Part shown: positions 11,189 through 49,199 of the stretch, piece after piece
How positions within the stretch are numbered: the stretch's first letter is position 1
Layout: each line of letters starts with the position of its first letter
NCBI GenBank assembly: GCA_009859145.1
Contig: VRVR01000030.1
Span: forward strand, 255,069-305,231
Direction: 5' to 3'
Source: Andalucia godoyi And28
Lineage: Eukaryota; Protista; Jakobida
Length of the DNA: 50,163 nt
The notes under the pieces: model-generated
The model's database searches: none
Seen by the model: the letters and a program-made list of their open reading frames with translations, nothing else
Told to the model about the DNA's origin: nothing
Program-made: the position numbers and the translations under genes

Positions 11189-11532
11189 TATGAGATTTAA
11201 ACCAAAACGACTCCAAAACAAAACCTGGCACTCACAACAAAAAATAATAATAACATAATAATAATTAAAAATAAAGAATGAAAATCGAAAGAGAAAAAGA
11301 CAGGTTTCGCGATTCGCACAGCTTCGCGAAGCAAAAGAGTTTCCCCCCGATTGAGGTCTCGTGACAGGTCATTAAATTCCCGCAAGTGGTGTGCTTGTCC
11401 GACTTCCCGACAATGACGTTCCTCGAATGAAACAACACGAATCTAATAGACGCGAAGGAGAGAAAGAAAGAAAGACAGACAGAAAGAAAGTGATCTGAGA
11501 GAAGAGCTTTTTGCATATCATTCGAGACAAAG

Positions 11533-12165: not shown

Positions 12166-12393
12166 AAAAGAAGAAAGGCCTCTTTTCATTTTTTAAAATT
12201 ACAGCATGCTTTTTTACAGTCAGCAAAGTCCGAGATTGGAGTCGCATTCAGTCCTTCATTTCCCACGTTCCATTTCTTCCTTCTTCTTTTTCTTTGCATG
12301 CGTGTGTGTTTTCTTTTTCATTTATGCTGTAGGGTACGCCTAGGCTGTTTTTGCTGTGTTTGTTTTCTTGAAGATCGGGGTTGCTGGAGGCAG

Positions 12394-14289
12394 ATGCTGC
12401 GGTCGCAGAGGCAGAAGCGCGCAGTAGAGAAGCTCGAGCGCAACCTGTTTCCGATTTCTTTTCTGTTCTTCTTCGTGTCGGTCGCCTTGATCATTGTGTT
12501 CACACTTCCCCGAGTTGTCACGCTGTTTGGTGTACCGATCGAGAATCCTGCATTGCAGAAGCCGCGGGAAGATGAGGAATCGATGATATCGCAGGGCGGG
12601 GTATCTGCGTTCCCTGCTTCGTCGTTCACGTCCATCTACCCCATATTTGCAAAGTCGAAATCCGGCTCTGTTCTATCCACATTTGAGATTTTCCGGAAGC
12701 TTCTGCCGTACACTTCGCTCTCCACAGGCACATCATCGTTTCTGTCAGTGTACAAGCCTCCAATGTCGCAGCAAACATCTTCCATCATCATTGCTGTGGA
12801 TTTTGAAGATGTGCAAATGTTCCCCTTTCTTGCGTCGTTTGCACATTCCTTGCTCAAGAGGGCGCAAGCAAAGTACATATCATCGGACGTTGTTTTCATG
12901 GTCGTTGAAGACTACCTGGAATTGGCCCACGAGCTTGTGCATCCTACGCAGCGGTTTGCGGGATTGTTTCCAACCGTGATTCGAGGTGTGATTCATCTCG
13001 CGAGCGCACACCGACTGCTGCGCGTGGATTCAGGGAACCGCATCGCGAATTCCACTGTGCTCATCAATACAGACTCTTATTTTGGGTATAGCTCACAGCT
13101 GGATCTTGTGCTAATGGCATCGTCCCGCCTTTCTGCCGCTCGTTTATCCTATGTCGTGCAGCACGGAGACATCGTTTCCCATCTGTGGAAGACGCTGTCG
13201 AGGATTCCGGTGGTTGTGGATCGCAGAGATCCCATGGTTTTGAGACTGCAAAACATTCAAGTGGTCTCCGAAACATTCCACACCTATGGAAATTCAGTTT
13301 CTACGCTGGCAGATATTGGAAAGAGCCTTGAACTGCAAATTCGGTCCCTGTCGAATCTAGACGAGCAGCTGCATCACTCGTACACTCATTATGTTTTTGA
13401 CTCCCAAACACTGTACTGTTTGTCACTTGCTGCTTTCCCCGTCGTGGGTCTGTTTGCTGCTAGTGCCTGCTGCCTCGCGGCCTTTGTCATGCATACGCGA
13501 ACGAAGGAGTCCATGATGATGGCGTCCATTCGCCAGGCCGCTCATTCTTCCAACACGAGACCCTCAGTCTCGGATGCGTTTACGCTGGACGCCGAAGTGC
13601 AGATTTTGAGATGGAGAATGTACGGACAGGCGATGAAGCGAATGGGATGGATCTGCGCCTTTGCATGTACGTTTGCTTTGGTACCGGATATGGACCTATT
13701 GTTTGCAGTTCCGTTTTATCTCTTGTTGCAAGGTGCTTTTTATCGAGGCTCTCGCTCCTTTGGGGTGCATGCCCATTCGTCTGTCAATGCACTGTTGACG
13801 GTGTATTACGTGCTGTCGACTTTTTTCGCAATGCTCTTTTTGTTTGAGCATGTGGGACTGAGCTTCTTCTGTGCAATCGGACAGGCTGCAATGTTCCCGT
13901 TCCTCGAGTCCACCGCAAAGTTCATCACCAGAAGCCGGCAGTTTAGAATTGTTCAATCGTCTGCAGAAGTGCTCTCCAAGAAGACAGACGGTGATCCCAC
14001 GCCTTCTTCCACTGGTCTGCAGATTGTTGAAGATGCATCGAGCAGAAGGTCCTCCCTGTTGTCACTGATGGCGTACGCTATGTCTCTCGTCTTCTTCGCT
14101 GTTACTCTGTTTTTGGTGATTATCCCATTGAATGTGTGGGTTCCGTTTCTTTTCCCGGGTGCTGCCATTCATCCAGCAGCTCCCGTTGTTCTGCTCGTCC
14201 GCAGCTGGTCCGTTCTTCTCCATTTTATCTTCTCCATGTTTATGTTCTGCCTGTCTGCTCCAACATCGTCTCCCACCCTCTCCTTCTGA
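12394..14289 (+). CDS. GPAA1: GPI transamidase subunit Gaa1/GPAA1; start placed at MLRSQRQK
   Basis: N-terminal TM helix, luminal domain, RSLSNLDEQLHHSYTHYVF (cf. RSLNNLLExxHQSFFFY), multi-TM C-terminus. Confidence 0.8.
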   Translation: MLRSQRQKRAVEKLERNLFPISFLFFFVSVALIIVFTLPRVVTLFGVPIENPALQKPREDEESMISQGGVSAFPASSFTSIYPIFAKSKSGSVLSTFEIFRKLLPYTSLSTGTSSFLSVYKPPMSQQTSSIIIAVDFEDVQMFPFLASFAHSLLKRAQAKYISSDVVFMVVEDYLELAHELVHPTQRFAGLFPTVIRGVIHLASAHRLLRVDSGNRIANSTVLINTDSYFGYSSQLDLVLMASSRLSAARLSYVVQHGDIVSHLWKTLSRIPVVVDRRDPMVLRLQNIQVVSETFHTYGNSVSTLADIGKSLELQIRSLSNLDEQLHHSYTHYVFDSQTLYCLSLAAFPVVGLFAASACCLAAFVMHTRTKESMMMASIRQAAHSSNTRPSVSDAFTLDAEVQILRWRMYGQAMKRMGWICAFACTFALVPDMDLLFAVPFYLLLQGAFYRGSRSFGVHAHSSVNALLTVYYVLSTFFAMLFLFEHVGLSFFCAIGQAAMFPFLESTAKFITRSRQFRIVQSSAEVLSKKTDGDPTPSSTGLQIVEDASSRRSSLLSLMAYAMSLVFFAVTLFLVIIPLNVWVPFLFPGAAIHPAAPVVLLVRSWSVLLHFIFSMFMFCLSAPTSSPTLSF

Positions 14290-23128: not shown

Positions 23129-23590
23129 TCTTTTCTTTTCTTTTCTAACGTGAGCCACAACCAGCAATGACAAGAAAATCGAAAATATGAATCAGCATAA
23201 TCAGTAAATGAAAGAAGAAAAAGAACGAAAATATAATAACAACAAAAGAAGAAAAGGCGGGACGTGTTAAAAGGAAAACGGGACTTATTCGATCAGAGAA
23301 AGGCACGCAAAGCCCATTCGGAGCAATTACTTTTTCCCCTTCTCTCTGTTCTCTTCTTTGCAGGATTCAAGCATCAAGGAATCAAGCAAAGAAGGAAACC
23401 CCGGCATTGTTTGGCGCCAGGCGGGTCTGTGCAAGTTTATTTTCTTAGATTTTAAATTTTTCTTGATGTAGTTTTTGTTTTGTTATTTGTTGTGCACAAA
23501 AAAAACCAAAAAAACCAAAAAAAAACACTCTAAAACTAAAACTAAAACTGTCGCCACTTTTCTGTTTCTTTTTCTTTGTGCGCTTGTCAA

Positions 23591-26500
23591 ATGTCACATG
23601 CTGATGTGGACAGGCAGGTTACAGTGCTGAAGAAACAATTGGCTGAGCTGGTGGATGAAATATTGTACAATGAGCAACAGATTGCCACGTACGAATCAGA
23701 AGTGGAGCGGCTGAAGGCTGTTGTCGCATCCTATGAATCCGAGCATCGGTCTCAGCACACTCTGGAATCCTTTATTGAGGAAAACCAAAAGTTGAAACGA
23801 GAGGTTTCTGAATTGCTGAGGAACCAGCAGCAAGCTCAAGACGAGTTGACGAGTGTCATACTGGACCAGAGCGCAAAGTTGTCGCACGTCGATCTTCATC
23901 CTGTGACTGTCACGGATCGTGATGCACAGACATCTCCGTTCGAGAGGGAGTCCAGAGCCGTGGAATTGGTTCGCGACTCCAACGAGACTTTTGACTTGGT
24001 CTGCAAAATCGCTGCCAACTTTGGAATCCACGTTGAGCGGTCTACGTGGAGTGCGGGCACTGCTTCGCAGATTCTCAGTGCAGTGGACCAGTCCAATGCC
24101 AAAGTCTCTGCGTTCGCCGCCGAAAACGATGCGTTGCGAGAAGAGGCTCGCAGATGGAGGGCCTCTATTTCGGAGATGCAGGAAGAAATGAAGGGTTTCA
24201 AGCGAGAAGTTGAGGCAGCTGCAGCCGCTCAGCGTGATGACCTTTCTTTCCAGGTCAAGGATCTGGAAATGCAGCTGGCCCTCGAAAGAAAGCGTATGTC
24301 TTTTTCATCTTTTGTTCTTGCTTTCCCTCCCCCACTTCTCTCTTCGCATGGGTTTGCTCGCTTTTTCTTCTTCCGTCTCGGCGTTTCTTATTCTCTAAGC
24401 CCCATTACATTCTTGATTTCTGTTTTTTAGAGAGGGAGCAAACACAAAGGATGCTTTCTGCCGAGCAATCCGCTAGATTGCAGTTGGATGCAGTTATGAA
24501 CGCAAGTCTGCAGACAGAGAGCACCATCAAGATTCGAGAGCTGTCTTCGAAGATTCTTGAGCTTGAATCGTCTCTGTCGGATGCGTCGATGAGGAGAGAA
24601 CAGGAACTTAGCCGAAAGGAAGCGCAGGCTGCTGCGACAGAATCTGAGCTCCAAACAAGAATACAGCATCTCGAAAATCGGTTAGAGGCCGATCGAAGTT
24701 CTGCAGAGATGGAGCGGAGCACACTGCATCAGAAGCTCCGGGATGCCATGGCGAATGCGTCAAAGATAGAGACGGTTCTCCAAGAAAAGATTTCTGAGCT
24801 GCGGGTTGACAGTGTGAAGAGTTTGGACACTGAGACCGCGAAGAGACTGGCGCAGCATGCGGTTGTGGAGTCGGAATTGAAAGAACGGATTCGCCTGCTG
24901 GAAGCCAGAATGCTTTCAGAGAAGGAGGAGTTTGACTCGGAGCGGTCCAGTTTACAAGCAAGATTGCAGGAGAGTCTAAAAATGGAAACGATTCTTCGGG
25001 AGAAGATCAGCGAAGTGAAGCTGGACTTTGAGCAGCTGCAGCCAAGACGAGCGCAAGAATCGTCTGAAGCTGATCTGAATGAAAAGATTCGCCATGTGGA
25101 GGCTCGTCTGGCACTGGAGAGGGACGCATTCGAGTCTGAAAAGGCGATGTTGAGGAATCGCTTGCAAGTCATGGAAACCGAATCCAGCAAAGTAGAGACT
25201 GGACTGAGAGAGAAGATCAGTCAACTGGTCCTTGACGGTACTCGGAACTCCGAAGAAGCGTTGGCAGCCAAGGCTCGCGAATTTCAGACGTTGGAAGCAG
25301 GCCTACGGGACACCATTGGCCGTCTGGAGGCGGAGCTTCGACTGCAAACAGAGGACGCCGAAGCCACTCGTTCTGCCTTGGAGCATCACGTGTCTTCTCT
25401 GCAAGAAGAAGTGACGCAAATGAATGCCAGCATATGCGAAAAGTCGATGTTGATCGAATCCATGGAAAAGTCAACAGTGTCTCACCAGGATGTTGAGTGC
25501 AGTCTGTCAGACAAGATTGAGCACTTGGAACGGCAGCTCGCTGAGCGAGACCAGACGTTTCTTGATCTGGACAATCAGTATCGCGTGGCCATGGACCAGG
25601 CGTCAGAGCGCGAGTTTGCTCTCCAGGAAAACATCAGCCAGTTGCAGGCAGAAATCGACCAGAACGTGCAGCTTTTCCGTGACCTTGAGCAGCAACTTGC
25701 GCATGAATCCACGGTCGAAACCGAACTTCGCATGAGAATTCAGGATTTGGAACGAAAACTCGCGGGCGCAGAGTCGCGGACGCAAAGTCAAAATTCAAGT
25801 GAGGTTACGGGACTGCAGTTGAGAATTGCGGATCTAGAGAGCACCTTACTGTCGGAGCGCCGCAAGCACGAGTACGAGACCGAAACTTGGAAGAACAAGG
25901 TTAAAATTGCGCATAATGAGAAGTCGGATCGTGTCAGTGTGCGAGAGCGCGCGCTTGAAGAAAAGGAGCTGTCGTTAATCAACCAGGAGCGTCACATAAC
26001 GAATTTGTGGAATCAGACGGAATCTGAGTTGGTGCATGTCCATGATGAGCTTCGTTTACAGGAGAAGCGTGTAGCCGGGATGGAAGTAGCGGCTGAAGAT
26101 TTTCTTCGAGATATGACGGCGCTGCGGCAGTCTGTCGAAGACGCCACCGCGTGTGTCCGTCAGTTTGCGCAGGCGCCGGCGTCGTTCTTCCAGAATCCGT
26201 CGAACATGGAGTCGCTTCAGCGTTTCGTCACGCTTCTGATCCAAGCCGCCGAGCAGTCTGATGTGCGCGGGCAGGTCATGGATGCACGCCTTCAGGTTCG
26301 ACTCCTGCGTGATGCGAACGCCCAACTCGAGCAGCAGCGAGTCTACCTTGACCGGCAGTTGCATGGTGTTCACAGCAAGCTGGCCTCTTTGGAACGCGAT
26401 CTTCGTAAATCGGAAGATGTTTTGCGAGCCACGATTCGAGAGCGGAACCGAGCGGAACTTCAGGTCACGAAACTGGAAGAGGAGATCGTCCTTTTGCACA

Positions 26501-31728: not shown

Positions 31729-32272
31729 TCAACCCTTTGGATCTCCAAAGATTTGATGGACGTACTTCAGAGCAGCAAGACTCGCATCGTGTTGCATGTC
31801 CCGTAATTTTGCGTGCCTCCTTGCACTTGAAAACTCGCGGACGGAAAAGGCGGCATCTTCAGGGAGCTGAACGACGGCCTTTCGACGGCCTGCATCTTGG
31901 TACGTTGACTGTCCCTTGTTGAGGGCCAGTAGATAGTCATGCAGTAAAGACTTGGGCAACCGCTTTTCCGACCACGTTTTCTCGTCAAATGTTCTTGGTA
32001 GTCCTTCGACAATACGGTCCAGCTTCTCCTTTGCACTCAGATTCCATCCCTGCTCACTGAACGCAGATCGTCGTTTCTTCTTCTTGTTGTTCTCTTTCGG
32101 CGGCTCAGCCCGCGCATCTGCATCCATCTCGTCCGTTATCCCAGTCTCATTCAAATGACTCGCTTTGAATCGCTTGGAGTCTCGATCCTTGCTGTCTCCT
32201 GTTCGTTTTGATCGTTTCCCGGATGTGCTGTCTTTGGAGACTTTCTGCTCATGCTTATGATGACGTGTTTGA

Positions 32273-32305
<33 letters not shown>

Positions 32306-32982
32306 GCAGAATCAGTAGCGAACGCATCTTCCTTCACCCTCTGCCTCTTTCGGCTTGACGATTCCAGACCATGTTCACCATCCCAACGATCCTTTCGATT
32401 AAAATTGTTGCTACCGTTGCCATTAGAACGACTGCTGTTGCTAATGTCGTTATTGCTGTTATTGATGTGATGGTTTCTACGAGAAGAACGATCTGCAAAC
32501 GACTCGTTTGCTTCCGCACGGGAAATCATTCTGCAAGTCCACCCAAGATGGCCTCGTCCGCCGCACAGGAAGCAATACTTTGTTTCCTTTGCTTCAAACA
32601 GCCTGGAGTTCGCGCACGAGAAGTGCCCGCTTACACCGCAGTTCATGCATACCGCATGCGAAGCAGGATCGCAGTCCATCAGTCCGGACATGAATGTGCG
32701 CTGTGGACAATCCCGGATGACATGACCCGTGAGATAGCACGCATGGCACTGCACATGCCGTGATCGTCCAAGCATCGATTCGGGGCAGTCCTGGGACTTG
32801 TGCCCCGGTTCCCCACAGCGATAGCAGAACCCGTGGCGGCACGAGTTCTGCTTGTGCTGCATCGACCCGCACAACAGACACACATCTCCTGAAGGAGGCT
32901 CTTCAAACCCCAGAGCCCGAAGCACCGGGTCTGAATGAGGAACAATCAGATCCGCTGCGCTCAATCCATAATATCGATTCAT
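31729..32982 (-). CDS. AIR1/2 (ZCCHC7)-like multi zinc-knuckle protein with an extra C-terminal dsRBD-like domain
   Basis: NRYYG motif (cf. GRYF); five CCHC knuckles (e.g. CYRCGEPGHKSQDC, YCFLCGGRGHLGWTC); C-terminal LPKSLLHDYL..HDASLAAL. Confidence 0.8.
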
Positions 32983-33387
32983 GCTACCGTCTCGGCTCTG
33001 CCGCTACTACCGTTTTTGTTGCAACCACTGATCTTGTTACTCGACTCCCCCTGCGCACGGCACTAAGCAGGAATAAAAAAGATAAATAAAAAATGTATAA
33101 AAAACATGAAGAAGAATTTAAAAAAAAATTAATAATATATAAATGAAAAGAAAAAGACGGGAAACAAATAGAGATAACACAATAGATGAAAAGAAAAAGC
33201 GGCGTCGATCCGCGAGTTGCGAATGTCGGAGGTTTGTCGGGTCTTTTTCTAAAAGGTGGTTTTGAAAAGTGCTGAGCAAAGCTTGAAGGAGACTGGTGGT
33301 GTGGATGTTGATGGTGGTGCATCTGCGAGATTGAGAGTTGTCTGTTGCTGAAAGACTCCTTATTTTCTTTTCTTTATTTTCTTCGGA

Positions 33388-33946
33388 ATGTCGGACAGTT
33401 GCATCTTTTGCAGGATTGTCAGAGGCGAAATTCCTTCGTACAAGGTGTACGAAGACGAACATGTGCTGGGGATCCTCGATGCCTTTCCAGCCGCTGATGG
33501 CCACACACTTGTGATTCCCAAGAAGCACGCTGCGCAGTTGTGGGACGCGTCGCATGAGGACTTGTCAAAGTGTATGGGCATTCTGCAGATTGTTGGAGAA
33601 AAGATCACGCAACTTCCCGGAGTCACAGGAATCAATCTGGTATGGCTTTCTTTTTGTCCCTCTTCTTCTTCTTCTTCTTTATATCTACATTATATATTTT
33701 ATTTAAAAACATAATTTAATCGAGTGTTGTTTTCCGACGAGTTTTCGGTCGTTTTTCTTTCTTTCCTGATCTGAGCATCAGCTGCAAAATAATGGAAAGT
33801 CCGCAGGTCAGGATGTTCATCACGTCCATTTTCACTTGATTCCGCGCCACGACGACGACGACCTGTGCCGCCTTCCAAAGTCTGGTCCGATGATCGAGTC
33901 GACGAAAGCCCAGTCTCTGCTAGCGTCGCTGAAAGTAGTCCTGTAA
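33388..33946 (+). CDS. HIT family nucleotide hydrolase (Hint-like), two exons 33388-33639 and 33782-33946
   Basis: CIFCRIVRGEIP, GHTLVIPKKH; exon 2 (not in the ORF track) gives LQNNGKSAGQDVHHVHFHLIPR. Confidence 0.95.
33640..33781 (+). other. Spliceosomal intron (142 nt)
   Basis: GTATGG donor, CAG acceptor; joins GINL to LQNNG. Confidence 0.93.
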
Positions 33947-34002
33947 TGAATTAAACGACGACTCGCATTTCTGTGTGTTTTTTTTTTTTGTGTTTTATGT
34001 GC

Positions 34003-35165
34003 TTAGTTTGAATCTGCCACGGGCCCTAACGTGCAATACAGGTAATGAAGGGCCATCAAACTGGCTGCATGCTCACCGGTCTTCACAGACGGATAGTTCT
34101 TGATGGTTGTGAACTCTCTGCGTGTGAAGATCGGGTCATCCGGAAGCAAAACGGAAATTTGGAACTCGTGTCCAAACTGCTGTCTCTCAAACTTGGGCCC
34201 GCCCTTCTTCAATGACTGCAAATATTCGAGAAGCATGGACTTTGGCATGCGCGTCGTGTCTTTCCACGTATCCTGGTCGAATGTCGCAGGCAAACTTTCG
34301 TGGAGACTCATTTCCTCGAGCGCTGCCTCGGTTTCCAACAGCGTGTCATCCAGTTCGAACTCGTCCAAGTTTGCTTCTTCAAGCTGCTGCTCTTCATCCC
34401 ACTCTGGGTGCGCATCCTTCTCATATACATCCACACCAGCATCATCGTCGACAAACATTGCTGCATTCGTTGCAAACAGCTCGCGACCGGTCAGTCCCTT
34501 CTTCTTCGGGCCGCCTTCCTTGTCCTTCGCTCTTTGCTCTGCCGCTCTCTTCAAGTCGTTCTCTGCCTTCCACTTGAAGAACAGCTCCTCTGTCAGCACC
34601 GTCTGATTTCCATCGACAAGCTTGGATCTCTCTTCGTCCACGACTTCCTCCAGCGTCTTTACTTCCTCCTCCGAGTCGTCCGAGGCCTCGGAGCCGCTTT
34701 CGTCTGCATCGCTGTCTTCTGCTGCAGCTTCCGCTCTTCTCTTCTCAGCTTCCTCGCGTGCAAGCCGATCCTTTTCAGTCTCTGCAGGACGGAAAAGACG
34801 CAACAGCTCCTCTTGGCGAGCCTTGTCCTGCTCGCGCTTCAACCGCCGAGCCTCGTTTGGATCCACAGTCTTGCGACCCCCACCTCCATGAATCTGCGTT
34901 CTAACAGTACTTACAAATTTCTGAACCTTTTTTGACTTGCTCTTGTTTTTCAATCCAAAACTGATATTCAAAAAGGAAGGACAAATTAAAAACATTAAAA
35001 AAATGGGTTAGTACGTGTAATTTGTGCCATCGCAGGGAAGAGTTGCCGATTTGCGAAACCGTGTGTGTACTACTATCCATAATAACGCCAGCAAAAAGAC
35101 AATGATGCATACGTCAATTCCTCGACCTTCTTTTCTTTTCTCTGCTTTTCCGCTTTCGGTGGCAT
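34003..35165 (-). CDS. ZC3H15: ZC3H15/Tma46 (DFRP1)-like protein lacking CCCH fingers, with a C-terminal dsRBD-like domain; exons 35165-35113 and 34960-34003
   Basis: Spliced N-terminus MPPKAEKQRKEKKVEELTFGLKNKSKSKKVQKFV; DFRP motifs LTEELFFKWK, LTGRELF, FVDDD. Confidence 0.85.
34961..35112 (-). other. Spliceosomal intron (152 nt) with a TACTAAC branch point at 35013-35007
   Basis: GTATGC donor, CAG acceptor; restores the conserved TFGLKNK. Confidence 0.93.
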
Positions 35166-35493: not shown

Positions 35494-35656
<163 letters not shown>

Positions 35657-35670: not shown

Positions 35671-36120
35671 ATGTTTTCAACACGGATTTCAAGGATCGTG
35701 CGTCCGATGTTTGCTAGTGCTCGGAATTTTTCAGAGGGAGGAGGACACCCAGATTTTGCGAAGCGGTTTAAAGCACCTGCTGCGTCTGAGAAGGAGATCC
35801 ATGATCGAATTGCACGGGATGTGAAAGCGGCGGACATTGTGCTGTACATGAAGGGCACTCCTGAGGCACCGCAGTGTGGTTTTTCACAAGCGGTTGTCAA
35901 GGTTCTGAAAGCAGAAGGCGTTCCTTTCAAGGCACACAACGTTCTTGCAGACGATGCACTTCGCCAGCATCTGAAGACTTTCACCGATTGGCCCACGATT
36001 CCTCAAATCTTCATTAAAGGAGAGTTCGTTGGAGGATGTGATATTCTTGTTGGAATGTACCAGGCTGGAGATCTTCACAAGACTTTGCTTGAAAAGGGCA
36101 TCAAGAAGGACAAGTCTTGA
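35671..36120 (+). CDS. GLRX5: Monothiol glutaredoxin Grx5, probably mitochondrial
   Basis: [32 protein letters not shown]; Arg/Ser-rich presequence [20 protein letters not shown]. Confidence 0.96.
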
Positions 36121-36328: not shown

Positions 36329-37555
36329 CTACAGGACTTCGGACGCACGACCCCAGTATCGGTTGATAAACGGAGTCTTCCATTGCTCAATCTCCGGATT
36401 CTTGTTCTCGGGATACCATTTGGAGACCTTCATGGTCTCATACGCGTCTTTCTGGGCAGATGAAAACGCATCGTAGCGGGCCTTGATCTTTTCCGCATCC
36501 TTTGCATTTGCCTCCTTCTTGGATTTCACAGCGGCCTTGATCGCATTCTTGATGCGATCGATCTCAGCAGCATCGGTAATTCCAGAGTCGTCGCAAATCT
36601 CCTGTGCACGATCTGCGATTGTGTCCATTTCCCAGTCGTGGTCAAACAACAGCGGCGGATTGTCTTCGCGCTCCACCTGCACTTGTACAGAAGTTTCCTG
36701 TCCGCTTGACGCCTCCTCAATGTCCTTCTTTCGGAGAATGTACGGAAGCGCATATGTAAACTCATTGCGACGCTCGATCGGCATCTTTTTGATCATCTCC
36801 TTTCGAGCTCCACATCGAAGTGCGTGGATGACGGTCGACTCGACTCGGCGCCACGATAGCTTCAGCCTTGAAAATGGAACCATGATTTCCTCAACCAGCT
36901 GCACAGACTTGAGAGAGATGAGTTCGGGCGGTGCTACCTTCGACTCGACGACGACAATCGCAGGAATCAAAACAACCTGGTCCTGACCGTCAACCTTGCA
37001 GAACTGTGGTTCTGTGACCCCAAACATGTAGATCTTGTGTCCCTCCGGAGTGCCATTCTCTCGCTCGGAAAGATACTTCCACAGGTGCTCGAATGTCCAG
37101 TCGTGATCAAAAATCCTTGCGTAGTTTTCCCATTCTGTTCCGCAAAAGTATACGTCCTTCCATTCCGTCCACGACTCTTCCACGCTTTCATCCGAAACTT
37201 CAAAGTACACCTTCTTGGCTTTTGGCGGACGCGGTTTCTTTGTTTTCGGCGCAGCCACCACAGCTTCCGTCTCCACAGGAGGGGGAGCAGCAGCACGTTT
37301 CCGCGTCGCTTGCGCCTTGGGCTCCGCTGCCGTCGCCTTTTTTTCCAACTTGTCGGCCTTGGGTTTGCCTGCTGTGGGCTTGTTGGCCTCAGACTTGACA
37401 CCATTGGATGGAGCAGAAGGTTTCGCAGGCATCGCCGGCTTGGAGGAAGTACGGGTTTTTCGAGGTGCGAACTGCTTCGAGCGAAGAGCTGCAGTCTCTG
37501 GAGAGGCCAGCGGGGCATCCACTGTGTCGTGCATCGAATGATCTTTGGAAGACAT
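36329..37555 (-). CDS. HIT4: HEAT INTOLERANT 4 (HIT4)-like nuclear protein; start placed at MSSKDHSM
   Basis: GTEW, IYMFGVTEPQ, IPAIVVVES, EFTYALPY, DWEMD, KWYP and the terminal PFINRYWGRASEVL resemble Arabidopsis HIT4 as I recall it. Confidence 0.8.
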   Translation of the reverse strand: MSSKDHSMHDTVDAPLASPETAALRSKQFAPRKTRTSSKPAMPAKPSAPSNGVKSEANKPTAGKPKADKLEKKATAAEPKAQATRKRAAAPPPVETEAVVAAPKTKKPRPPKAKKVYFEVSDESVEESWTEWKDVYFCGTEWENYARIFDHDWTFEHLWKYLSERENGTPEGHKIYMFGVTEPQFCKVDGQDQVVLIPAIVVVESKVAPPELISLKSVQLVEEIMVPFSRLKLSWRRVESTVIHALRCGARKEMIKKMPIERRNEFTYALPYILRKKDIEEASSGQETSVQVQVEREDNPPLLFDHDWEMDTIADRAQEICDDSGITDAAEIDRIKNAIKAAVKSKKEANAKDAEKIKARYDAFSSAQKDAYETMKVSKWYPENKNPEIEQWKTPFINRYWGRASEVL

Positions 37556-37731
37556 GTTGTTATGAAGATTCGCTTTGTCGTACAACCGAGTACACACACA
37601 TGCACACACACACACACAAAATGAGAAACGAAACTCAATGATGTTTTCTCTGAGACTCGCTTCTTTGCGCAGACAGAGAGCTTCTGAAGAGGGTTTAATC
37701 CCCTCTTCTTTCTCTCTCTCTCTTGGAATCA

Positions 37732-37745
37732 GCATCACGTGATGC
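37732..37745. promoter_or_regulatory. 14-bp palindrome GCATCACGTGATGC (E-box core), copy 1
   Basis: Seen directly; about 177 nt upstream of the HIT4-like ATG. Confidence 0.55.
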
Positions 37746-38170
37746 AATGAAAACAGCTCTCGTCGGGAAAAAACCAAGCGACTTCCATTTCCGATCAGCG
37801 GACGTTTGAGCAATGGCAATTCTATTTCAAAATGAACACCAAACAAAACAAAACAAAACAAAACAAAACAAAAAGAGAAAAAAAAAGAAAAGAGGCAATA
37901 ATCAATTATCCTTTCCTTTATCTCAACCGAGTCGTATGGTGAACGGATTGTACATGGTGTAGTTTACTCGTCTTCTTTGTTATTTGATTGTCGAAAAAGA
38001 AAAAAAAAAAAAAGAAAAAACAGGCAAGGAAGAAGAAGAAGGACTAAAAGCGGAGCTCTGTTTCTTGGGAGACTTTCGCAAAGCTTGTTCGTTTGCGAAT
38101 CACGCAGGTTTTTTTCTACCCCCCAGTTGTTTTGCGGAGATCTAGGCTGCTCTTGGGTTTTTCTCTTTCA

Positions 38171-39907: not shown

Positions 39908-41314
39908 ATGACACGACGACCACCGTTATTTGTGGTTTTGAACTCGTCATGCACCGATTCAAAAGGTGTTTGTTTCAGTGTCCCGTCAGCGCAGGAGAGG
40001 GTTCTGACGACAGAGTCGGTTGATTCTTCGTTCGAGTCGTCTGATAGTAAGACTCGAAGGAAGAACGGAATTGCTGTGCGTGCATCTGGTCCGTCGATCG
40101 GCGTCGTTCCTCAGGAAACGAGGTTTGACCAGGTGCACATCGGACCCGATTGCAGCGTGCTGTATGATGGTCTTCTGGGAGAATGCGCCGTGGTCCCATT
40201 CATGGGCAGCAGGTCGTCAGTCCACTTTTTTTCAAGCTCTTATTCCTCTGCCTACGGCAAAGACACGTTTTTTCGACTGGCTAATTTATGTGCTCATGAC
40301 TTTGCAGAAGCCCGCGAATCTGGCGCAGTGAAAGAGTTTAGAATACGTGCAAGGCTGGGGGTGTACGGAGCCATACAGAATCTGGTGGCTTTGCCGGAGC
40401 CGTGCGATGACTTTTTATGTGACGATCAATCGTCTTCTGACACGACTATGGAAATCATCGAGAAGTCGTTTGATGTTGTCAGTGATCCGGCGCGCGCACC
40501 ACATGCCATCCTGCTCCTTAGTTTTTTATGTTTTGTGGATGCGGAAGAAGAGCCTACTGGCGCGCGATGGCGATCCACGACGTTTGTGTTGCTGAAACCG
40601 ACGACTGCCGTTACCGAAGAAAGGCATCGGCAGCATAATCTATCTGTCGATCGACTGATTTCAGCTCTGCATAGGCTCTCGGGATCGGACAGCGCTACGA
40701 AGATTTCTTGGAGAGAACAGGCAGTTTTGAGAGAATTGCAGCCGGTGCTTGCAGCCCCATCGTCGATTGTCTTGTACATTGCATGTCTGGATCCTGGTGT
40801 GGATTCTGATGACTCTCTGAAGAAGAATTTGAGTACAATTAGAGATCTCGTTTCGCACCGCACCGATCGTCTGTCCTCGACTCGGACGCTCTCGAATTCC
40901 GAGGATGCCGAAACTCCTTCCACATCCCGCTCTGTTGACTCGATTGCGAGGACCACACCAGCCGCGTCTGCTATAACCCGCCTCCAAGAGAAGCTGCTTG
41001 CCGAAAAGGCAAGTTCCAGGAGGCTGCATCGATCTTACGCAAGCCAAAATCGCTTTCCGTCAAATCTGAGCAACGGTGGTGGCTCAAATTCTAGTTTCCC
41101 TTCGACTCCGCGAAGTGTTGGTGTGTCGTCCAACGGTTTCACGACGGCTTCCACGACGATTCCTGACATTGTTGTGAAGGGTCACGTATTTGAAACGCTC
41201 GCCCAGCGCGTGGTCGTCTGCGCCGAGCATTCTAATGTAGGACCTACGAAGACTCCACGTTTCTTTTCGTTTCGGGAGTCCGCTGGTTTCCTTGTTGACG
41301 GGTCTCGAAGATGA
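39908..41314 (+). CDS. Highly divergent kinesin-motor-like protein with degenerate nucleotide motifs
   Basis: RFDQVH (FxFDxVF), RAPHAILLL (SRSHAI), NLSVDRLISAL (alpha4), ISWREQAVLRELQPVL..LYIACLDP (PYRDSKLTRLLQxSL..MIAC.SP). Confidence 0.65.
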   Translation: MTRRPPLFVVLNSSCTDSKGVCFSVPSAQERVLTTESVDSSFESSDSKTRRKNGIAVRASGPSIGVVPQETRFDQVHIGPDCSVLYDGLLGECAVVPFMGSRSSVHFFSSSYSSAYGKDTFFRLANLCAHDFAEARESGAVKEFRIRARLGVYGAIQNLVALPEPCDDFLCDDQSSSDTTMEIIEKSFDVVSDPARAPHAILLLSFLCFVDAEEEPTGARWRSTTFVLLKPTTAVTEERHRQHNLSVDRLISALHRLSGSDSATKISWREQAVLRELQPVLAAPSSIVLYIACLDPGVDSDDSLKKNLSTIRDLVSHRTDRLSSTRTLSNSEDAETPSTSRSVDSIARTTPAASAITRLQEKLLAEKASSRRLHRSYASQNRFPSNLSNGGGSNSSFPSTPRSVGVSSNGFTTASTTIPDIVVKGHVFETLAQRVVVCAEHSNVGPTKTPRFFSFRESAGFLVDGSRR

Positions 41315-41544: not shown

Positions 41545-44500
41545 CTATCGATTTGATAAGCTCGTTCGCGGTCTTGATAGTTTTTCTGCATTGGAAATTT
41601 GCAACTCTGCGACATTAGCCTCCAGTGCCTTGTTGCGAGACCGGAGCTGATCGATCAGCGACGACACGGGGTTTTCATGTCGGGGCCGACTTGATTGTTG
41701 AGATACAATCGGGCGACGTGCGGGTGTCAAGGACACTGTCGATGGTTGTAAAGGTTCCTGAAGTCTTGAAGTTTTGATGAACACTCGGTTGCCCGAGGAG
41801 CTCTTGCCCCTTCCCATAATGACCGGTTCGTGACCAGAGACGAAGGGATTGGAGTATCCGTACTCTTCCTCGAAAAGCGGCGCGTTCAGATGGTACTGAC
41901 GGTCGTTGCGCTTCACAGACGACGACGGTGACCCGACGGCTGCTTTTGCAGACTTCTGGCGCCTCTTGTTTCGTGACGATGCAGCCACCATCAACCCGTC
42001 TGGAGAGTCGTCTTCCATGTTCGCTGTCAAAGAAGAAGACAACGGAACAGCCAACAACCGTCCAGAAGAAGAGGAAGGTCGAAACTTAGAATGAGCGGAC
42101 TGGGGGCGACCTGAACTTCGAGGACGAGCTGACGGAGAGGTCTGACGTGCGTCCTCCTCCTGCTCACCCTCCCCTTTCTCGAGGGGCTTCGCCGCGGCTT
42201 TCGCTTGTGCAATTTTGTTGAGATTCACGTCGAAGTCCTGCCCCCAGTCTTCTGCAATGATGTCATCGAACTCATCATCCAGAACAAAATTGTCATCGCC
42301 TCGAGCGCTGTCATCCGCATGAGAATCCGGAGACCTTGAAACTGCCTCCATGGAGGCAGGAAGGAGAGTAGCAGCATCTGAGGCTTCCGAAACATCCTCT
42401 GCAGACCCCACAGAGGACAGCGATGCAGCAGAGTTGGACGACTGCGGACGTCTTGATTCTCCAGCGTTGGCGGAGTCCGCGCTGAATTCATCTTCTTCGG
42501 AAACAAACAATCCTCCACGACTCAGCAACCTCTTCCTTCCTTCCGAGACTGACGCAGATTCTCCTCTTGACGGCACCCGTTGATCCTCTTTCAAAAACTC
42601 TCGCTGCTCTCCTGATCTGTTCAATCGGGAGACCGAATTCGGTCTCCAAGCTGCACGGACAGACGACCTGTGCTCCAACACCACATTTTCCTGGAAGCTG
42701 TCTCCCGGAGATCTATGAGACGACGGGCCATCGCCGGAAAGAATCTTGCGATGTTCCAAGTCCAAAGCCTCCGGAGGAGGGCGCTGGCGAGACGGGGGAC
42801 GCGAGAACACTTTCCCCGCTTCCGCGGCCAACCCGGTTGTTTTTGCCGCCGAAGCCGTTGCAGTGCCGATGCGCAGCGGGTCTGAAGGTGCGTCATTGCT
42901 GGAAGACACTGATCGGGCATGCGCACTGGCCACCCGTCTCTCCTTGTTCTTACCATGCGACGCAGCGGATACGTTTTCTGGCTTTGCGGCATTGCCAAAG
43001 GTAACAGTCGTGTCAACCACGCGAAGATGCCGTGGAAATACGGAAAAGACCTGGATGCGGACAGTATGACCATAAAGGTCCTCCGGAGAGTCCACCCATC
43101 CAAAATCGTTGACGCAATCCATGATGGACCGATCAGGTTCTGAGAAAATAATCTCGCTCCTTGCGTTCACGCGAACGTTTCGATACACATATGTTGCATG
43201 GCGAGAGTCTGTGACGTCTGTGACGTGAACATCGAATTTCCAATCCTCCACAGACGTGGAGTGGCGTATTTTGACATAAAGGAAGTAGAACTCCCTCTTT
43301 GTTCGGTGCGCAACGTCAGAGTCTGCATCCGATGATTTTTCAGAGTTTGTTTTTCGAGAGGAGGAGGCAATGGATGCCGAGGACGATTGCGGCCGCGCAG
43401 ACGACAGGAATCGCGATTCTGCATCTTCAAGACCAGATGGTGGTGATCCATTGTTTTGCTGCGCACCTAATGAGGACGCAACAATAGATCTGCGCTTGCG
43501 ATCGGCGTCCTCCGCCAACGTCGACCGTCTCTTCGTCGGGTACAGGGACGAATGATCGTCCACAGTGGATTTGTTCTTCTCTTCCACGTACCCGTCCATA
43601 GAGGTCCAATCCCGGGTGTCCACAGGTCTGGTATCCATGGCGGGCGTTGGACCAGCGGTATGCAGCGCTGCAAAGGGCGGGACGAAGTGTCCAGAAGGCA
43701 CAACACCTGATGCAGTAAGGAGATTTCCCGAAGAACTGAAAGGGCTTGCAGTGCCGCCGCCAAGCGTAGACGGGAGTTCTGCGGGGCCGCCGGATGAAGC
43801 CAGCGACTTTGTTGCCGACATTGCCGCGCGGAATGCAGCCATTGAGGCGGAAGGCTTCCTTTGCAATCCCCCTAGATGGGATTGTGGCTGATTGAACAAC
43901 TGCGGCATCAAACTCCCCGAATCCGAGTCCACGGAATGGAAATTCGGCGGAGGAAGCGCCGACGGATTTGAGCTCGACAGCATGGAGTCCCACATCGCAG
44001 ACTCGACATATCCTGTTCTTGACTGCACATCATGCTCAATCCCTTGCCACGCAGATGTCTCCATGTCCTGCATCAAGTCTCGAATTCGCTTTCCGCCCAC
44101 AGAAGAAGCCGGTCTCGCCGCCGGGGCATCCATAGTCGCCGATGGCGGTCGTGACGAAATCTTCAATCGCAGTTGCTCTGAACTCGAAGCAGTATCCGGC
44201 CGGTTCGCCCTTCGAACGCGGGTTGGAGAAAAATTGCGAACCCCGACCGGCTGCAGCATCTCGTCCATTTCTTCCGTCTCAATGTCGTCTGTGATTTCCA
44301 CGGGCTTTGCAATGGACGTCTCCGTCACGGTCGCGGTTTCCTCAACTTTTTGGACCCTTTCGGCGTCAAGAATGTTTCGTGCAACCGCAGTATCGCCTTT
44401 AACAGAATCCGCATAGCGATGGCGCGGAGTCTTGCCCTTGACAAAAATCGGGAACGGGACCAGTGGATCAAAGAATGCGTCCATTGTCCTTTCCCGCTCC

Positions 44501-44568
44501 TCCAAGGTCCTCAGGGCTTGCTCTATCTTTGTGAGGCTCATGCTCACGTGTGCGTGGTATGTCGTCAA
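41545..44568 (-). CDS. Large, mostly disordered Ser-rich hypothetical protein (about 1000 aa) with one beta-rich island and a C-terminal coiled coil
   Basis: 3-kb uninterrupted ORF; no family recognised; start 44568 or 44541. Confidence 0.8.
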   Translation of the reverse strand: MTTYHAHVSMSLTKIEQALRTLEERERTMDAFFDPLVPFPIFVKGKTPRHRYADSVKGDTAVARNILDAERVQKVEETATVTETSIAKPVEITDDIETEEMDEMLQPVGVRNFSPTRVRRANRPDTASSSEQLRLKISSRPPSATMDAPAARPASSVGGKRIRDLMQDMETSAWQGIEHDVQSRTGYVESAMWDSMLSSSNPSALPPPNFHSVDSDSGSLMPQLFNQPQSHLGGLQRKPSASMAAFRAAMSATKSLASSGGPAELPSTLGGGTASPFSSSGNLLTASGVVPSGHFVPPFAALHTAGPTPAMDTRPVDTRDWTSMDGYVEEKNKSTVDDHSSLYPTKRRSTLAEDADRKRRSIVASSLGAQQNNGSPPSGLEDAESRFLSSARPQSSSASIASSSRKTNSEKSSDADSDVAHRTKREFYFLYVKIRHSTSVEDWKFDVHVTDVTDSRHATYVYRNVRVNARSEIIFSEPDRSIMDCVNDFGWVDSPEDLYGHTVRIQVFSVFPRHLRVVDTTVTFGNAAKPENVSAASHGKNKERRVASAHARSVSSSNDAPSDPLRIGTATASAAKTTGLAAEAGKVFSRPPSRQRPPPEALDLEHRKILSGDGPSSHRSPGDSFQENVVLEHRSSVRAAWRPNSVSRLNRSGEQREFLKEDQRVPSRGESASVSEGRKRLLSRGGLFVSEEDEFSADSANAGESRRPQSSNSAASLSSVGSAEDVSEASDAATLLPASMEAVSRSPDSHADDSARGDDNFVLDDEFDDIIAEDWGQDFDVNLNKIAQAKAAAKPLEKGEGEQEEDARQTSPSARPRSSGRPQSAHSKFRPSSSSGRLLAVPLSSSLTANMEDDSPDGLMVAASSRNKRRQKSAKAAVGSPSSSVKRNDRQYHLNAPLFEEEYGYSNPFVSGHEPVIMGRGKSSSGNRVFIKTSRLQEPLQPSTVSLTPARRPIVSQQSSRPRHENPVSSLIDQLRSRNKALEANVAELQISNAEKLSRPRTSLSNR

Positions 44569-46324: not shown

Positions 46325-46526
46325 TGCGGTGGCGGCCTTTCCTTTTTTGGACAGCAAGACTGCAGGAGATTCCGCTGACACCTGGAAGGGGCGGCGAAAT
46401 CCCCGACCGTCGTTATCGCTCTGGTCCTGCATCGCTGTTTTCTTTTAAAGGAGGGGATGTCTAGGCGCTGGTCTCCGTTTGACAGTCTGCCCTCCCATTT
46501 TGACTTCCAAAGCAACAACAACAACA

Positions 46527-49199
46527 ATGCATTCAATGCCTTTCGCAAGAGAGCCCCGCATTTCCATGTCTGCCGATGATGGCGTGAACGAGACGGACGA
46601 ACTGCGAGTATACGGCACATTCGGAATCCAGTCCAGCGAAAAGACGCTTGGAGAACAGCAGAACTCTGGATTTCTTCCGCCCTCGCAGACGTCTCAGAAC
46701 TGGAAATCCGTTAGCGATCGAAAGACTTCCAAGGGACCAAAGAAGTCGGTCAGACAGCGGGCGTTTCTCCGGCTGCAGGATTTTGGCGGAACTGCCTCAA
46801 GACTCCAGATGACGAATGCATCTTCCTACTTTGCATTCGTGTTTGTCGACACTGCCTTGCGAGGAATCTCTCAGGTTTTCTTCGTAAGCAACCCGCTGAC
46901 AGGAATTCTGTTCGTTGCCGGTATTGCTATTGAATCGTGGTATCTGGCGGTGGCGTGCTTGATTGGTGCCGTATCCTCCACGGTTTCTGCATACTTTTTC
47001 GAGCTGGACAAAGGATCCACGCAGTCCGGCTTATTCGGATACTCAGGGGTCCTGACTGCAATGGCAGTGGCGTTCTTTTCGTTTGGAGACAAGAGCGACC
47101 CTTTTCCGGCTCCGCAGATTTTTGTGCCGCTCGTGTTCCTCCCTGTGTTTGCAACCATCTGCACAGTGGCGTTCGGATCCTTCTTTGCTGGAAAGCTTGG
47201 AATTCCTCCTTTCACATTCCCTTTTCAAGTTGTGACCTGGACGTGGCTGCTCTTTGCGCAGGCTTCGCTGTACTTTCAGAACAATGGGAATATTCTGGCT
47301 CCTCGTTCTCCGCCGGCGTTCACTTCGATGAGCACAGCCGCCGCGCTGACGTATGATGGTTCGGAAGTCGTTAGGTCATTCTTCACGAGCGTTTCGCAAG
47401 TATTTTTCCTCGAGAATCCATATTCGGGAGCTGTTATGCTTCTCGGGATTGCAGTATCTTCTCCCATTATGTCCGCCGCAGCGCTGGGTGGAACCGTCTT
47501 GGGGGTGCTGTTTGCAATGGGTTTGGGGATCGCGCCGGCACCTATTTATGCGGGGCTTTGGGGTTATAATCAATGTCTTTCTGCGATTGCCATTGGTGGG
47601 CTGTTTTTCGTACCCCAAGGTACGAAGACACTGGTGATGTACGTGCTTTGCATCTTGTTCACGACACTCATTCACGGAGCAGTTGCATCATACCTTGTGC
47701 TTTTTGCTCTTCCTGCACTAACATTCCCGTTTACCATGGCGTCTTGGATCTTTTGCCTGCTGGGTGGAGCGGCAAAGGGCATCGTGGCCGTAGAGCTTTC
47801 TGCGGTGTCTGTTCCGGAAGATCATCGCCGCCGATTCCTTCTTTCTGCATTCGTTTTCAGAACGTTCAATTCCATCAGACTTGCTCACTCTTTTGTCGGG
47901 AACCAGATTCGGAAAGAAGATCTGCGATCCATCGAGAACGACATTGTGCCAGTTCTGACGTGCACGTGGGCAGCACACGGCTGCTTTGCAAAAATTCAAA
48001 AACTCAGAGATGTTGGCGTGGACTGCAGCATTCCAGATTATGACCTCCGTACTCCTCTTCATTTGGCTTGTTGCGAAGGGCACAACAAGATCGCCGAAGT
48101 TTTGCTGAAGCGATTTTACGTGCCGATTTCAGTCGATAAATTCGGAAATTCTCCACTGATGGATGCCATTTTCCACGGCCAGAGCAATATCGTTCGAATG
48201 TTTGTCAGTCACGGAGTTCGCGTCCAGGGAATTCGCGAGGAAACGCTCGGATTTTGGCTCTGCGCAGCGGCATACGAAGGAGAGTGGCAGTTTATTCGGC
48301 TTTGTTTGAGTGCTGGAGTCAATGTGAATTCTCTCGACTACGACTCTCGATCAGCGCTGTCGCTGGCGGTATCGGCGAACCGAAGCAGCATCGTCCCATA
48401 CCTGCTGGCGTGCGGCGCGAATCCTTACCTGCGAGATCGGTTTGGAAAGTGCCCCATTGATGAAGCGGCTTCGCAGGAAATGAAGCAGATGCTGCAAGCT
48501 CGTCATTCAAACGTCCAAACCACCACGGACAACCTTGCCCGCTTGTCGGAATCAATAGATGCGCAGAGTTCAGCTGGATTGCCAATGGTGAGCAGTGCTG
48601 ATGGTTCTGATGACGGTGCAGAGGGACAGATGGATGAGATGTCTGTTATTATCACCACACTGCTTTGCACAAAGGCATCCAGCGATGACGTCCCTGGAAT
48701 CCAATCCTTGCTTACAAGCCACCAACGGCATGGTAGTCTGGTAAGCAGCACTGACTATGACGGCCGAACACCGCTGCATGTTGCGTGTTCGCGAGGTTCG
48801 TCGAATGCTGTGCGATTTCTTCTTGAAAATGGTGCAAACGCACTTGCAGTGGATCGTTGGGGACGTACCCCGCTTTACGAAGCTGCCTATTCTGGGCATG
48901 CAGAGGCAGTCCTCAGCATCCTCAGTCATGCGGATAATGCTGCGTATTCAGATGCTTTCGTTTCAAAGGAGAAACTCGGATTCACCAAGTACTACCGGTT
49001 GGTACACGAAATTTGCATGCTGGCTTCATCTGGGAATTCTAAACTCTTGGATTTGCTCTTCCGTCACGGAGTAATTCCAAAAGACATTTGCGATTATGAC
49101 CAACGTACACCACTGCACATTGCAGCTTCTCTTGGGCATCGTGAGGTAGTCAGTGTATTGTTGGACGCAGGAGTCATCCCGAATCCCATGGATCGGTGA
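46527..49199 (+). CDS. Urea transporter (UT/SLC14 family) fused to C-terminal ankyrin repeats; extends to TAG 49281-49283 if TGA 49197 is decoded
   Basis: LRGISQVFFVSNP, GLFGYSG, PPFTFPF, SQVFFLENP, GLWGYN, PALTFPF, VPEDHR; then DYDxRTPLH and DR(W/F)GxTPL ankyrins. Confidence 0.93.
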   Translation: MHSMPFAREPRISMSADDGVNETDELRVYGTFGIQSSEKTLGEQQNSGFLPPSQTSQNWKSVSDRKTSKGPKKSVRQRAFLRLQDFGGTASRLQMTNASSYFAFVFVDTALRGISQVFFVSNPLTGILFVAGIAIESWYLAVACLIGAVSSTVSAYFFELDKGSTQSGLFGYSGVLTAMAVAFFSFGDKSDPFPAPQIFVPLVFLPVFATICTVAFGSFFAGKLGIPPFTFPFQVVTWTWLLFAQASLYFQNNGNILAPRSPPAFTSMSTAAALTYDGSEVVRSFFTSVSQVFFLENPYSGAVMLLGIAVSSPIMSAAALGGTVLGVLFAMGLGIAPAPIYAGLWGYNQCLSAIAIGGLFFVPQGTKTLVMYVLCILFTTLIHGAVASYLVLFALPALTFPFTMASWIFCLLGGAAKGIVAVELSAVSVPEDHRRRFLLSAFVFRTFNSIRLAHSFVGNQIRKEDLRSIENDIVPVLTCTWAAHGCFAKIQKLRDVGVDCSIPDYDLRTPLHLACCEGHNKIAEVLLKRFYVPISVDKFGNSPLMDAIFHGQSNIVRMFVSHGVRVQGIREETLGFWLCAAAYEGEWQFIRLCLSAGVNVNSLDYDSRSALSLAVSANRSSIVPYLLACGANPYLRDRFGKCPIDEAASQEMKQMLQARHSNVQTTTDNLARLSESIDAQSSAGLPMVSSADGSDDGAEGQMDEMSVIITTLLCTKASSDDVPGIQSLLTSHQRHGSLVSSTDYDGRTPLHVACSRGSSNAVRFLLENGANALAVDRWGRTPLYEAAYSGHAEAVLSILSHADNAAYSDAFVSKEKLGFTKYYRLVHEICMLASSGNSKLLDLLFRHGVIPKDICDYDQRTPLHIAASLGHREVVSVLLDAGVIPNPMDR

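Follow-up and report, generated by a model that had tools for sequence, protein, structure and literature searches.

A predicted DUS2-type double-stranded RNA-binding domain shared by a finger-less DFRP1 homologue and a neighbouring zinc-knuckle protein in Andalucia godoyi

Introduction

How did two neighbouring genes with otherwise different products come to end in the same domain, and what might that domain do for each of them? The question is raised by a stretch of DNA from Andalucia godoyi And28 (50,163 nucleotides; contig VRVR01000030.1 of assembly GCA_009859145.1, positions 255,069 to 305,231), which was analysed as a whole and is referred to here as the window; all positions are those of the window. 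Gene A (31729-32982, minus strand) is an intronless coding sequence of 417 aa, taken from the list of open reading frames (ORFs) and identical to database protein P0003, and its product carries CCHC zinc knuckles. Gene B (ANDGO_06782; 34003-35165, minus strand) encodes a 336-aa homologue of Tma46/ZC3H15 (DFRP1). A preliminary description of the sequence had called the two products AIR-like and Tma46-like and had supposed that a local domain duplication gave one module for binding tRNA or structured RNA to both. [quoted passage not shown]

Results

Two neighbouring proteins end in homologous domains

Comparison of the two products by BLASTP gave a single significant segment, the C-terminal domains. 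Residues 326-413 of A (31744-32007, minus strand; supported by BLASTP against B and by the AlphaFold2 (AF2) and Foldseek results below) align with residues 233-324 of the B ORF, which are residues 239-330 of the spliced protein P0002 (34024-34299, minus strand). In this alignment 36 of 92 positions are identical, 55 of 92 are positive and 4 are gaps (E=2e-16), in agreement with the roughly 33 identities in roughly 85 positions that had been counted by hand for 31759-32001 and 34036-34293. When each domain was compared by tblastn with the six frames of the window, the other copy alone was recovered (E=2e-16 and 3e-17); a third copy was not found in these 50 kb, the next matches having E-values of at least 0.27. 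Helix 1 of the domain is marked by the signature LPxx[FY]Dxx(T)W...PK, helix 2 by K[TD]AEHxA[SA]L. As had also been described, A and B lie on the same strand with just a HIT gene between them; a detail not in that description is that the HIT gene is on the plus strand.

The shared domain is predicted to be a dsRBD with a DUS2-type extension

The B domain matches the Pfam profile dsrm at E=0.0025 (18.8 bits, under the cut-off of 23), and the A domain has no Pfam dsrm match; another member of the family, P0011, clears the cut-off at 31.6 bits. AF2 models of both domains have the order alpha-beta-beta-beta-alpha. In the B model the helices span residues 27-36 and 79-98 and the strands 43-49, 52-58 and 71-74, with a mean predicted local distance difference test score (pLDDT) of 63 and 70-80 in the core. 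The A model has helices at 29-39 and 79-98 and strands at 46-49, 55-58 and 69-71, with a mean pLDDT of 73 and about 80-87 in the core. The alignments feeding the models were shallow, consisting of three and four sequences.

When the models were compared with the Protein Data Bank (PDB) by Foldseek, the top matches of the B model were the dsRBDs of DHX29 in ribosomal complexes, HYL1, DRB4 and DUS2; on the DUS2 dsRBD 4WFT it superposes with a root-mean-square deviation of 2.0 A and a template modelling (TM) score of about 0.6 on the target. The A model matched the dsRBDs of DRB2, DRB7.2/DRB4, DRB3, DRB4, Loqs, HEN1, RNase III and DUS2. For both models nearly all matches were dsRBDs, with Foldseek probabilities of 0.9-1.0.

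At the level of sequence, a three-sequence profile had no significant match among PDB sequences, and the link to DUS2 emerged only with a ten-sequence profile, built from ten domains among the 12 proteins of the exhaustive search described below. The six best matches of that profile were human and mouse DUS2 dsRBDs (E=8e-8 to 9e-6), followed by HYL1 (2.6e-4), the Amphimedon Dus2 dsRBD 8B02 (3.6e-4) and DRB4 (8.8e-4). The alignment with human Dus2 (hDus2) includes the N-terminal extension, profile positions 9-91 being matched to hDus2 chain residues 15-95, and KFDRRAYPAQITPKMCLLEW of DUS2 is paired with YDaatWkekktPKslLleY of the family. The resemblance of a FD..(W/Y)..PK extension to DUS2, which the preliminary description had pointed out, was therefore recovered, at E=8e-8 with ten sequences and about 0.01 with seven.

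Because the fold predictions, the Foldseek matches and the profile matches to solved dsRBDs agree, we take the shared domain to be a dsRBD, as was first suggested, with an alpha-beta-beta-beta-alpha core predicted for both copies and dsRBDs, including those of DHX29 and DUS2, as the nearest solved folds. The likeness to the extended DUS2 dsRBD holds, with moderate statistical weight.

Gene B encodes a DFRP1 homologue that lacks zinc fingers

Gene B is read from two exons on the minus strand (exon 1, 35113-35165; exon 2, 34003-34960), separated by a 152-nt GT..AG intron of phase 2 (34961-35112) whose splice sites were read from the sequence. Its spliced product is P0002, which is also EukProt EP00762_Andalucia_godoyi_P005366 (ANDGO_06782). 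This protein matches Pfam DFRP_C (34387-34656, minus strand; E=4.8e-16, 59.5 bits, cut-off 27.5). In a phmmer search of the PDB the sole match was yeast Tma46 (7rr5_T; whole-protein E=3.3e-4), with B residues 1-82 aligned to Tma46 residues 1-82 and B residues 117-184 to Tma46 residues 218-280. The first of these segments is a Tma46-type basic region (34768-35165, minus strand; MPPK...FGLKNKSKSKKVQKF...) that is split by the intron. With the N-terminus and the DFRP region both aligning to Tma46, the designation of B as Tma46-like stands. The DFRP domain of Tma46/ZC3H15 binds the GTPase DRG1.

Where Tma46 has its zinc-finger region, B has a short acidic linker. B holds one Cys in total (aa 327) and therefore has no CCCH fingers, and no zf-CCCH Pfam match was found in B or in its relatives with DFRP and dsRBD. 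As judged from these alignments, B is the DFRP1/Tma46 homologue of A. godoyi, without zinc fingers and with a C-terminal dsRBD instead.

The architecture of B is older than Andalucia

To place this architecture we searched 1.84 billion representative proteins exhaustively with HMMER, at a threshold of E<=1e-3. The domain family comprises only 12 proteins at this threshold, and so the domain is not the high-copy mobile module that the preliminary description had been wary of. A finger-less DFRP_C with a C-terminal dsRBD was also found in four proteins: P0004, which is on a 2.4-kb contig of run SRR15116022 and whose domain shows 42-45% identity with that of B; P0014, which is Naegleria fowleri XP_044558272 (UniRef name 'ZC3H15/TMA46 family C-terminal domain-containing protein'); and P0007 and P0013, both from eukaryotic contigs. 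All four have the FGLKNK motif, DFRP_C and a weak dsrm match; P0004 and P0014 contain zero Cys, P0007 and P0013 one each.

Jakobids, to which Andalucia belongs, and heteroloboseans, to which Naegleria belongs, both fall within Discoba. Since the architecture is present in Naegleria fowleri and on other eukaryotic contigs, it is old and no local gain in B; it predates Andalucia and, within Discoba, is ancestral to the jakobid-heterolobosean part at the least. The earlier proposal of a local duplication that supplied both genes is therefore not supported, since the copy in A is the only one that could be a local gain.

Synteny is preserved in part. On the jakobid-like contig that encodes the P0004 ortholog (L002; 2.4 kb, SRR15116022, 82-2039) a HIT gene lies immediately upstream of the B ortholog on the same strand, and the contig ends 81 bp past HIT. 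The HIT-B adjacency is thus conserved between Andalucia and L002, but the relative orientation is not, and neither a HIT nor a CCHC neighbour was found beside the B homologue at the Naegleria locus (L003).

The same extended dsRBD (LPxx[FY]..W..PK) also occurs in at least two further architectures, that of P0010 (L005, 3001-4305) and P0011, and that of P0012. P0010 and P0011 have an unannotated N-terminal region in common, and P0011 gives a faint match to Hen1_Lam_C (E=0.023), which recalls the La-motif-then-dsRBD order of HEN1. P0012 carries a Q/Y-rich tail.

Gene A carries five zinc knuckles

The product of gene A matches Pfam zf-CCHC at 8.5e-09, and a regular expression places the knuckles at aa 35-48, 53-66, 79-92, 112-123 and 137-150, so that the array covers aa 35-150 (32533-32880, minus strand). 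Four of the knuckles are canonical C-x2-C-x4-H-x4-C; the remaining pattern (aa 112-123) has a short H-x2-C spacing. The array is followed by a long charged linker of low complexity (32008-32532, minus strand), which in translation is N/S-rich, has a D/E run and is K/R-rich with KKKKRR, and then by the dsRBD. Within the linker a perfect (CCTCGT)x5.3 repeat at 32274-32305 encodes the DEDEDEDEDE run, and length polymorphism is likely there.

Compared with the PDB, the knuckle region matches retroviral nucleocapsid (1.3e-5) and TUT4 (4.2e-4), whereas the match of the array to Air2 (2lli; aa 34-151) is collinear but weak (E=0.008). For the last knuckle taken by itself the best match is Air2 ZnK5 (E=0.004). 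An IWRxY motif between knuckles 4 and 5 characterises Air1/2, and Air2 3nyb_B shows CPSIWRA. With the pattern [ILV][WFY]Rx[YF] this motif was not found anywhere in A, the only, faint, echo being RMISRAE after knuckle 5. The label 'AIR-like' is therefore unproven: the five knuckles are there, but IWRxY is missing and retroviral nucleocapsids outscore Air2.

RNA-contact residues are kept in part

The roles of hDus2 residues K371, K419, K420, E376, R361/R362 and Q367 were taken from published work (PMC6451096), in which mutation of K371 lowers tRNA binding about 8-fold and the R361/R362 pair of the extension makes hDus2 prefer tRNA to dsRNA, a preference to which Q367 also contributes. In our alignments the equivalent of K371, the 'PK' lysine of helix 1, is invariant across the family. 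E376 is represented by E in B and D in A, and K420 by K in B and R in A; the Naegleria-type copies retain R-K at the basic pair of helix 2. B has Q-D and A has E-K at the positions of R361/R362, where the consensus of the family is non-basic. A clear GPxH loop between beta1 and beta2 was not seen in the alignments, B having FGHEF. The core of the A domain is basic (net +5, pI 9.8). As the PK lysine is kept and the R361/R362 pair is not, RNA binding by the A and B domains is plausible on these comparisons, whereas a specificity for tRNA is not supported; with Q-D and E-K at that pair, the proposal drawn from this locus, that TRAMP and the ribosome are linked in tRNA quality control, is speculation.

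The best match of the A domain is its neighbour

The best match of the A domain anywhere is B (63.5 bits), followed by the B ortholog P0001 (46.6 bits) and by P0011, of another architecture (41.6 bits). Seen from B, the jakobid-type ortholog P0004 scores highest (89 bits), then A (63.5 bits), then the Naegleria-type copies (42-55 bits). In a neighbour-joining tree A is sister to the jakobid-type B clade, and in the family alignment a two-residue insertion before beta3 (PEDAAF/PDDPIF) is present in A and B alone. Of the 12 family matches, none but A and B come from Andalucia, and in this genome of about 20 Mb their genes are two apart; by a rough estimate the chance that two members of the family would sit so close is below 1e-3.

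A recent duplication or gene conversion is ruled out by the 39% identity and by DNA comparisons that gave chance matches only. Since the copies are without similarity at the DNA level, any local gain by A is old.

The locus and the remainder of the window

About 1 kb separates the start codon of A (32982) from the stop codon of B (34003), and about 2.3 kb lies between the domain copies. The sole gene in between is of the HIT family (HINT-like; 33388-33946, plus strand; Pfam HIT 3.9e-14), with exons at 33388-33639 and 33782-33946, a GT..AG intron at 33640-33781 and an HVHFHLIP motif in exon 2. It is convergent with B, and the two stop codons, as read from the sequence, are 56 bp apart. The HIT gene is outside the duplication, and its adjacency to B is kept in a relative. 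The A. godoyi genome has been described as about 20 Mb long with about 50% GC, genes that lie close together, and GT..AG introns that are rare and about 150 nt in length (PMC7050145); the compactness of the window and its GT..AG introns of about 150 nt agree with this. A kinetoplastid origin, which the compact and intron-poor appearance of the window might suggest, is rejected on the introns and on the EukProt identity of P0002.

Between gene B and a divergent glutaredoxin gene (35671-36120, plus strand) there is an intergenic (AG)n/(CT)n microsatellite of 160 bp (35494-35653; about 80 dinucleotide units, 96% matches). The genes around this locus are of the common housekeeping sort. They include ELO, MPG glycosylase, an actin-family protein, GAPDH, katanin p80, beta-adaptin and copine, and also ethanolamine-phosphate cytidylyltransferase, the glutaredoxin, ICln and a GNAT acetyltransferase, with the Uba4-like and urea-transporter genes that follow. 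A Uba4/MOCS3-like protein with ThiF and rhodanese domains, the activating enzyme of the URM1/tRNA-thiolation system, is encoded at 9800-11221 (minus strand), about 20 kb away and with no evident connection to A or B. At 7289-9592 (minus strand) an ORF of 767 aa joins isochorismatase, a 2OG-Fe(II) oxygenase (AlkB-like) and GST N and C domains in an unusual three-enzyme fusion, and at 46479-49199 (plus strand) one of 906 aa joins a urea transporter (Pfam UT 1.5e-74) to C-terminal ankyrin repeats. Five long ORFs, ranging from 284 to 1007 aa, had no Pfam match at E<=1e-3: 41545-44568 and 36329-37861 on the minus strand, and 12298-14289, 39908-41314 and 23576-24430 on the plus strand.

Discussion

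The locus can be explained if an old, finger-less DFRP1 with a dsRBD (B) was the source of the domain in A, and if the domain provides both proteins with an RNA anchor. As a whole we lean towards this account, if only a little. For the origin of the A domain taken separately, an ancient duplication of the 3' end of B in the jakobid lineage is the most likely explanation, with somewhat better than even prospects, though it is not demonstrated. The 3' end of gene B, stop codon included, would have been duplicated in tandem; in the jakobid lineage the piece would then have been joined to a zinc-knuckle gene next to it, and the copies would have diverged to their present 39% identity. What the analysis shows is the homology, the predicted fold, the domain architectures, the taxa in which that of B occurs and the adjacency; we infer both the direction and the mechanism of this duplication, as we do the RNA-binding functions of the two domains. 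Only the fusion in A looks lineage-restricted, and sampling is thin.

In yeast, the fingers of Tma46 bind between the head and the shoulder of the 40S subunit, and their deletion abolishes ribosome binding by Rbg1/Tma46 (bioRxiv 10.1101/2020.07.06.190082). In B, the dsRBD may substitute for the lost fingers and serve as the RNA anchor of DRG1-DFRP1 on the ribosome, with an rRNA helix or a tRNA as its ligand. In A, where the zinc knuckles bind single strands, it could allow structured RNA to be recognised as well.

Several observations weigh against this account. An ortholog of A was not found in the exhaustive representative search, in homologue searches of an index that evidently lacks most of the eukaryotic relatives and gave only P0001, P0011, the query itself and a generic CCHC protein, or in two metagenome DNA scans. 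The mean pLDDT of the AF2 models is moderate (63 and 73) and falls below 50 in the N-terminal extension, the packing of which is not modelled confidently, and the Foldseek E-values are modest (3e-3 to 0.2). With a seven-sequence profile, made of the DFRP-linked copies plus A, DUS2 still comes first, but at an E-value of about 0.01 that ties it with DRB4. Among the contact residues, the equivalent of K419 is gone, being V in B and L in A, and it is also lost in P0001 and P0004; the core of the B domain is near neutral (net +1, pI 8.2). The grouping of A with the jakobid-type B clade has a bootstrap value of just 23%. On a profile of the DFRP-type dsRBDs made without Andalucia B, A scores 43 bits, no better than P0011 (51 bits) or P0012 (48 bits), and so A could belong to the extended-dsRBD family independently of B and be just as old. 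Finally, comparison of the 3' ends of A and B and the DNA downstream gave only chance matches, and with no DNA similarity left no duplication boundary is visible.

Some of these points favour other explanations of the origin. If extended dsRBDs form an old eukaryotic pool from which A and B each drew independently, their adjacency would be coincidental or secondary. The presence of the domain in at least two to three other architectures (P0010/P0011 and P0012) would fit such a pool, as would the identity of about 30-39% that all of these show to one another, the failure of A to nest in the DFRP-type clade by profile score, and the 23% bootstrap. However, the top match of A is the copy next door, by at least 17 bits, the two have an indel in common, and the family has just these two members in about 20 Mb of genome, both of them at loci two genes apart; we consider independent acquisition quite improbable. 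At the other extreme is the idea with which the analysis began, that a recent local duplication placed a tRNA-binding module on a TRAMP Air-like factor and on a Tma46-like factor and so linked them in tRNA/RNA quality control. It would account for adjacent, homologous copies with a DUS2-type extension and for five CCHC knuckles in A as in Air1/2, with the collinear 2lli match (E=0.008) and with Air2 ZnK5 as the best PDB match of the last knuckle (E=0.004). But the occurrence of the B architecture in Naegleria fowleri and on other contigs means that the dsRBD of B was not gained locally, the copies are 39% identical and without DNA similarity, A has no IWRxY and matches retroviral nucleocapsids better than Air2, and the R361/R362 pair of DUS2 (PMC6451096) is not conserved. 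For B this idea is already partly refuted, and taken together it is very unlikely; a quality-control link for tRNA between TRAMP and the ribosome is no more than a possibility.

The main functional rival is that the domains are degenerate 'type B' dsRBDs which make protein contacts, either with each other in an A-B heterodimer or with a common protein partner. The loss of the K419 equivalent from A, B, P0001 and P0004, the lack of a canonical GPxH loop and the near-neutral core of B (net +1) would be expected of such a domain, and the Foldseek matches include a protein-binding dsRBD pair, DRB7.2:DRB4 (8igd). On the other hand, the PK lysine corresponding to hDus2 K371 is invariant across the family, the second basic residue of helix 2 and the acidic residue of helix 1 are kept, and the A copy is strongly basic (net +5, pI 9.8). 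We regard a protein-binding role as unlikely, if less so than either of the other origins of the pair is, and prefer to think of the A and B domains as candidate RNA anchors that derive from an ancient duplication.

In its boldest form, the RNA-anchor account would state that in Discoba a DUS2-type dsRBD, not CCCH fingers, tethers DRG1-DFRP1 to the ribosome or to tRNA, and that the jakobid copy, on a possibly Air-like zinc-knuckle protein, makes pausing and surveillance factors recognise the same structured RNA. We rate this as a long shot. Were it true, the 'unique' Dus2 dsRBD would be the prototype of an ancient and portable eukaryotic module. If the substitution for the fingers holds, it would be a natural domain swap, in which a ribosome-binding pair of zinc fingers was exchanged for a dsRBD in one eukaryotic supergroup, and it would give a handle on what the anchor of DRG1-DFRP1 must recognise; the N-terminally extended dsRBD, described as peculiar to the Dus2 of Holozoa (PMC9775027), would also have a wider distribution. 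Gene A, if its proposed origin is true, would be a small, clean case of an RNA-binding architecture made from the 3' end of a neighbour.

The literature searches made gave no paper on DFRP together with a dsRBD, and the extended dsRBD has been called unique to Dus2 (PMC9775027); for these reasons the combination seen in Discoba, a DFRP1 that has no fingers but has a DUS2-type dsRBD, which was apparently copied onto a zinc-knuckle protein, is a variant not described before, though its parts are known. This is real but modest domain shuffling, an incremental result for specialists in DRG/DFRP or dsRBD evolution, and the general understanding of dsRBDs or DFRPs is unchanged by it.

Comparison with known systems sets out what is familiar and what is not. 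B resembles Tma46/ZC3H15 (DFRP1) in its DFRP domain and in the motif MPPK...FGLKNK..KVQK at its N-terminus; the two CCCH fingers of Tma46/ZC3H15 are absent from B, and the C-terminal dsRBD of B is not found in the yeast or the human protein. Like A, Air1/Air2 (TRAMP) and ZCCHC7 have five CCHC knuckles set close together near the N-terminus, and the last knuckle of A, CFLCGGRGHLGWTC, resembles Air2 ZnK5, CYNCGGKGHFGDDC; Air proteins, however, have neither the long charged linker nor the dsRBD of A.

Among dsRBDs, the dsRBD-like domain of DHX29 (22tu, 9cpa) is the top Foldseek match of the B model (E=3e-3) and comes from a dsRBD in ribosome-bound complexes. Although one weak family match, P0008, fits Pfam DSRM_DHX29, A and B do not match that profile; DHX29 is missing among the PDB matches of the family profiles at the sequence level, and A and B are without a helicase context. 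The dsRBD of DUS2 (human 4WFT, 5OC4 and 5OC6; Amphimedon 8B02) is the best PDB sequence-profile match, extension included, with KFDRRAYPAQITPK in DUS2 corresponding to [FY]DxxTWxxxxxPK in the A/B family, and it has the same alpha-beta-beta-beta-alpha core that is predicted for the A and B domains. In DUS2 the dsRBD is joined to the Dus catalytic domain, whereas the copies described here are joined to zf-CCHC in A and to DFRP_C in B, with no Dus match by Pfam. Dus2 proteins with a dsRBD have been reported from Holozoa plus Fonticula only, with the extension called unique (PMC9775027); A and B come from Discoba.

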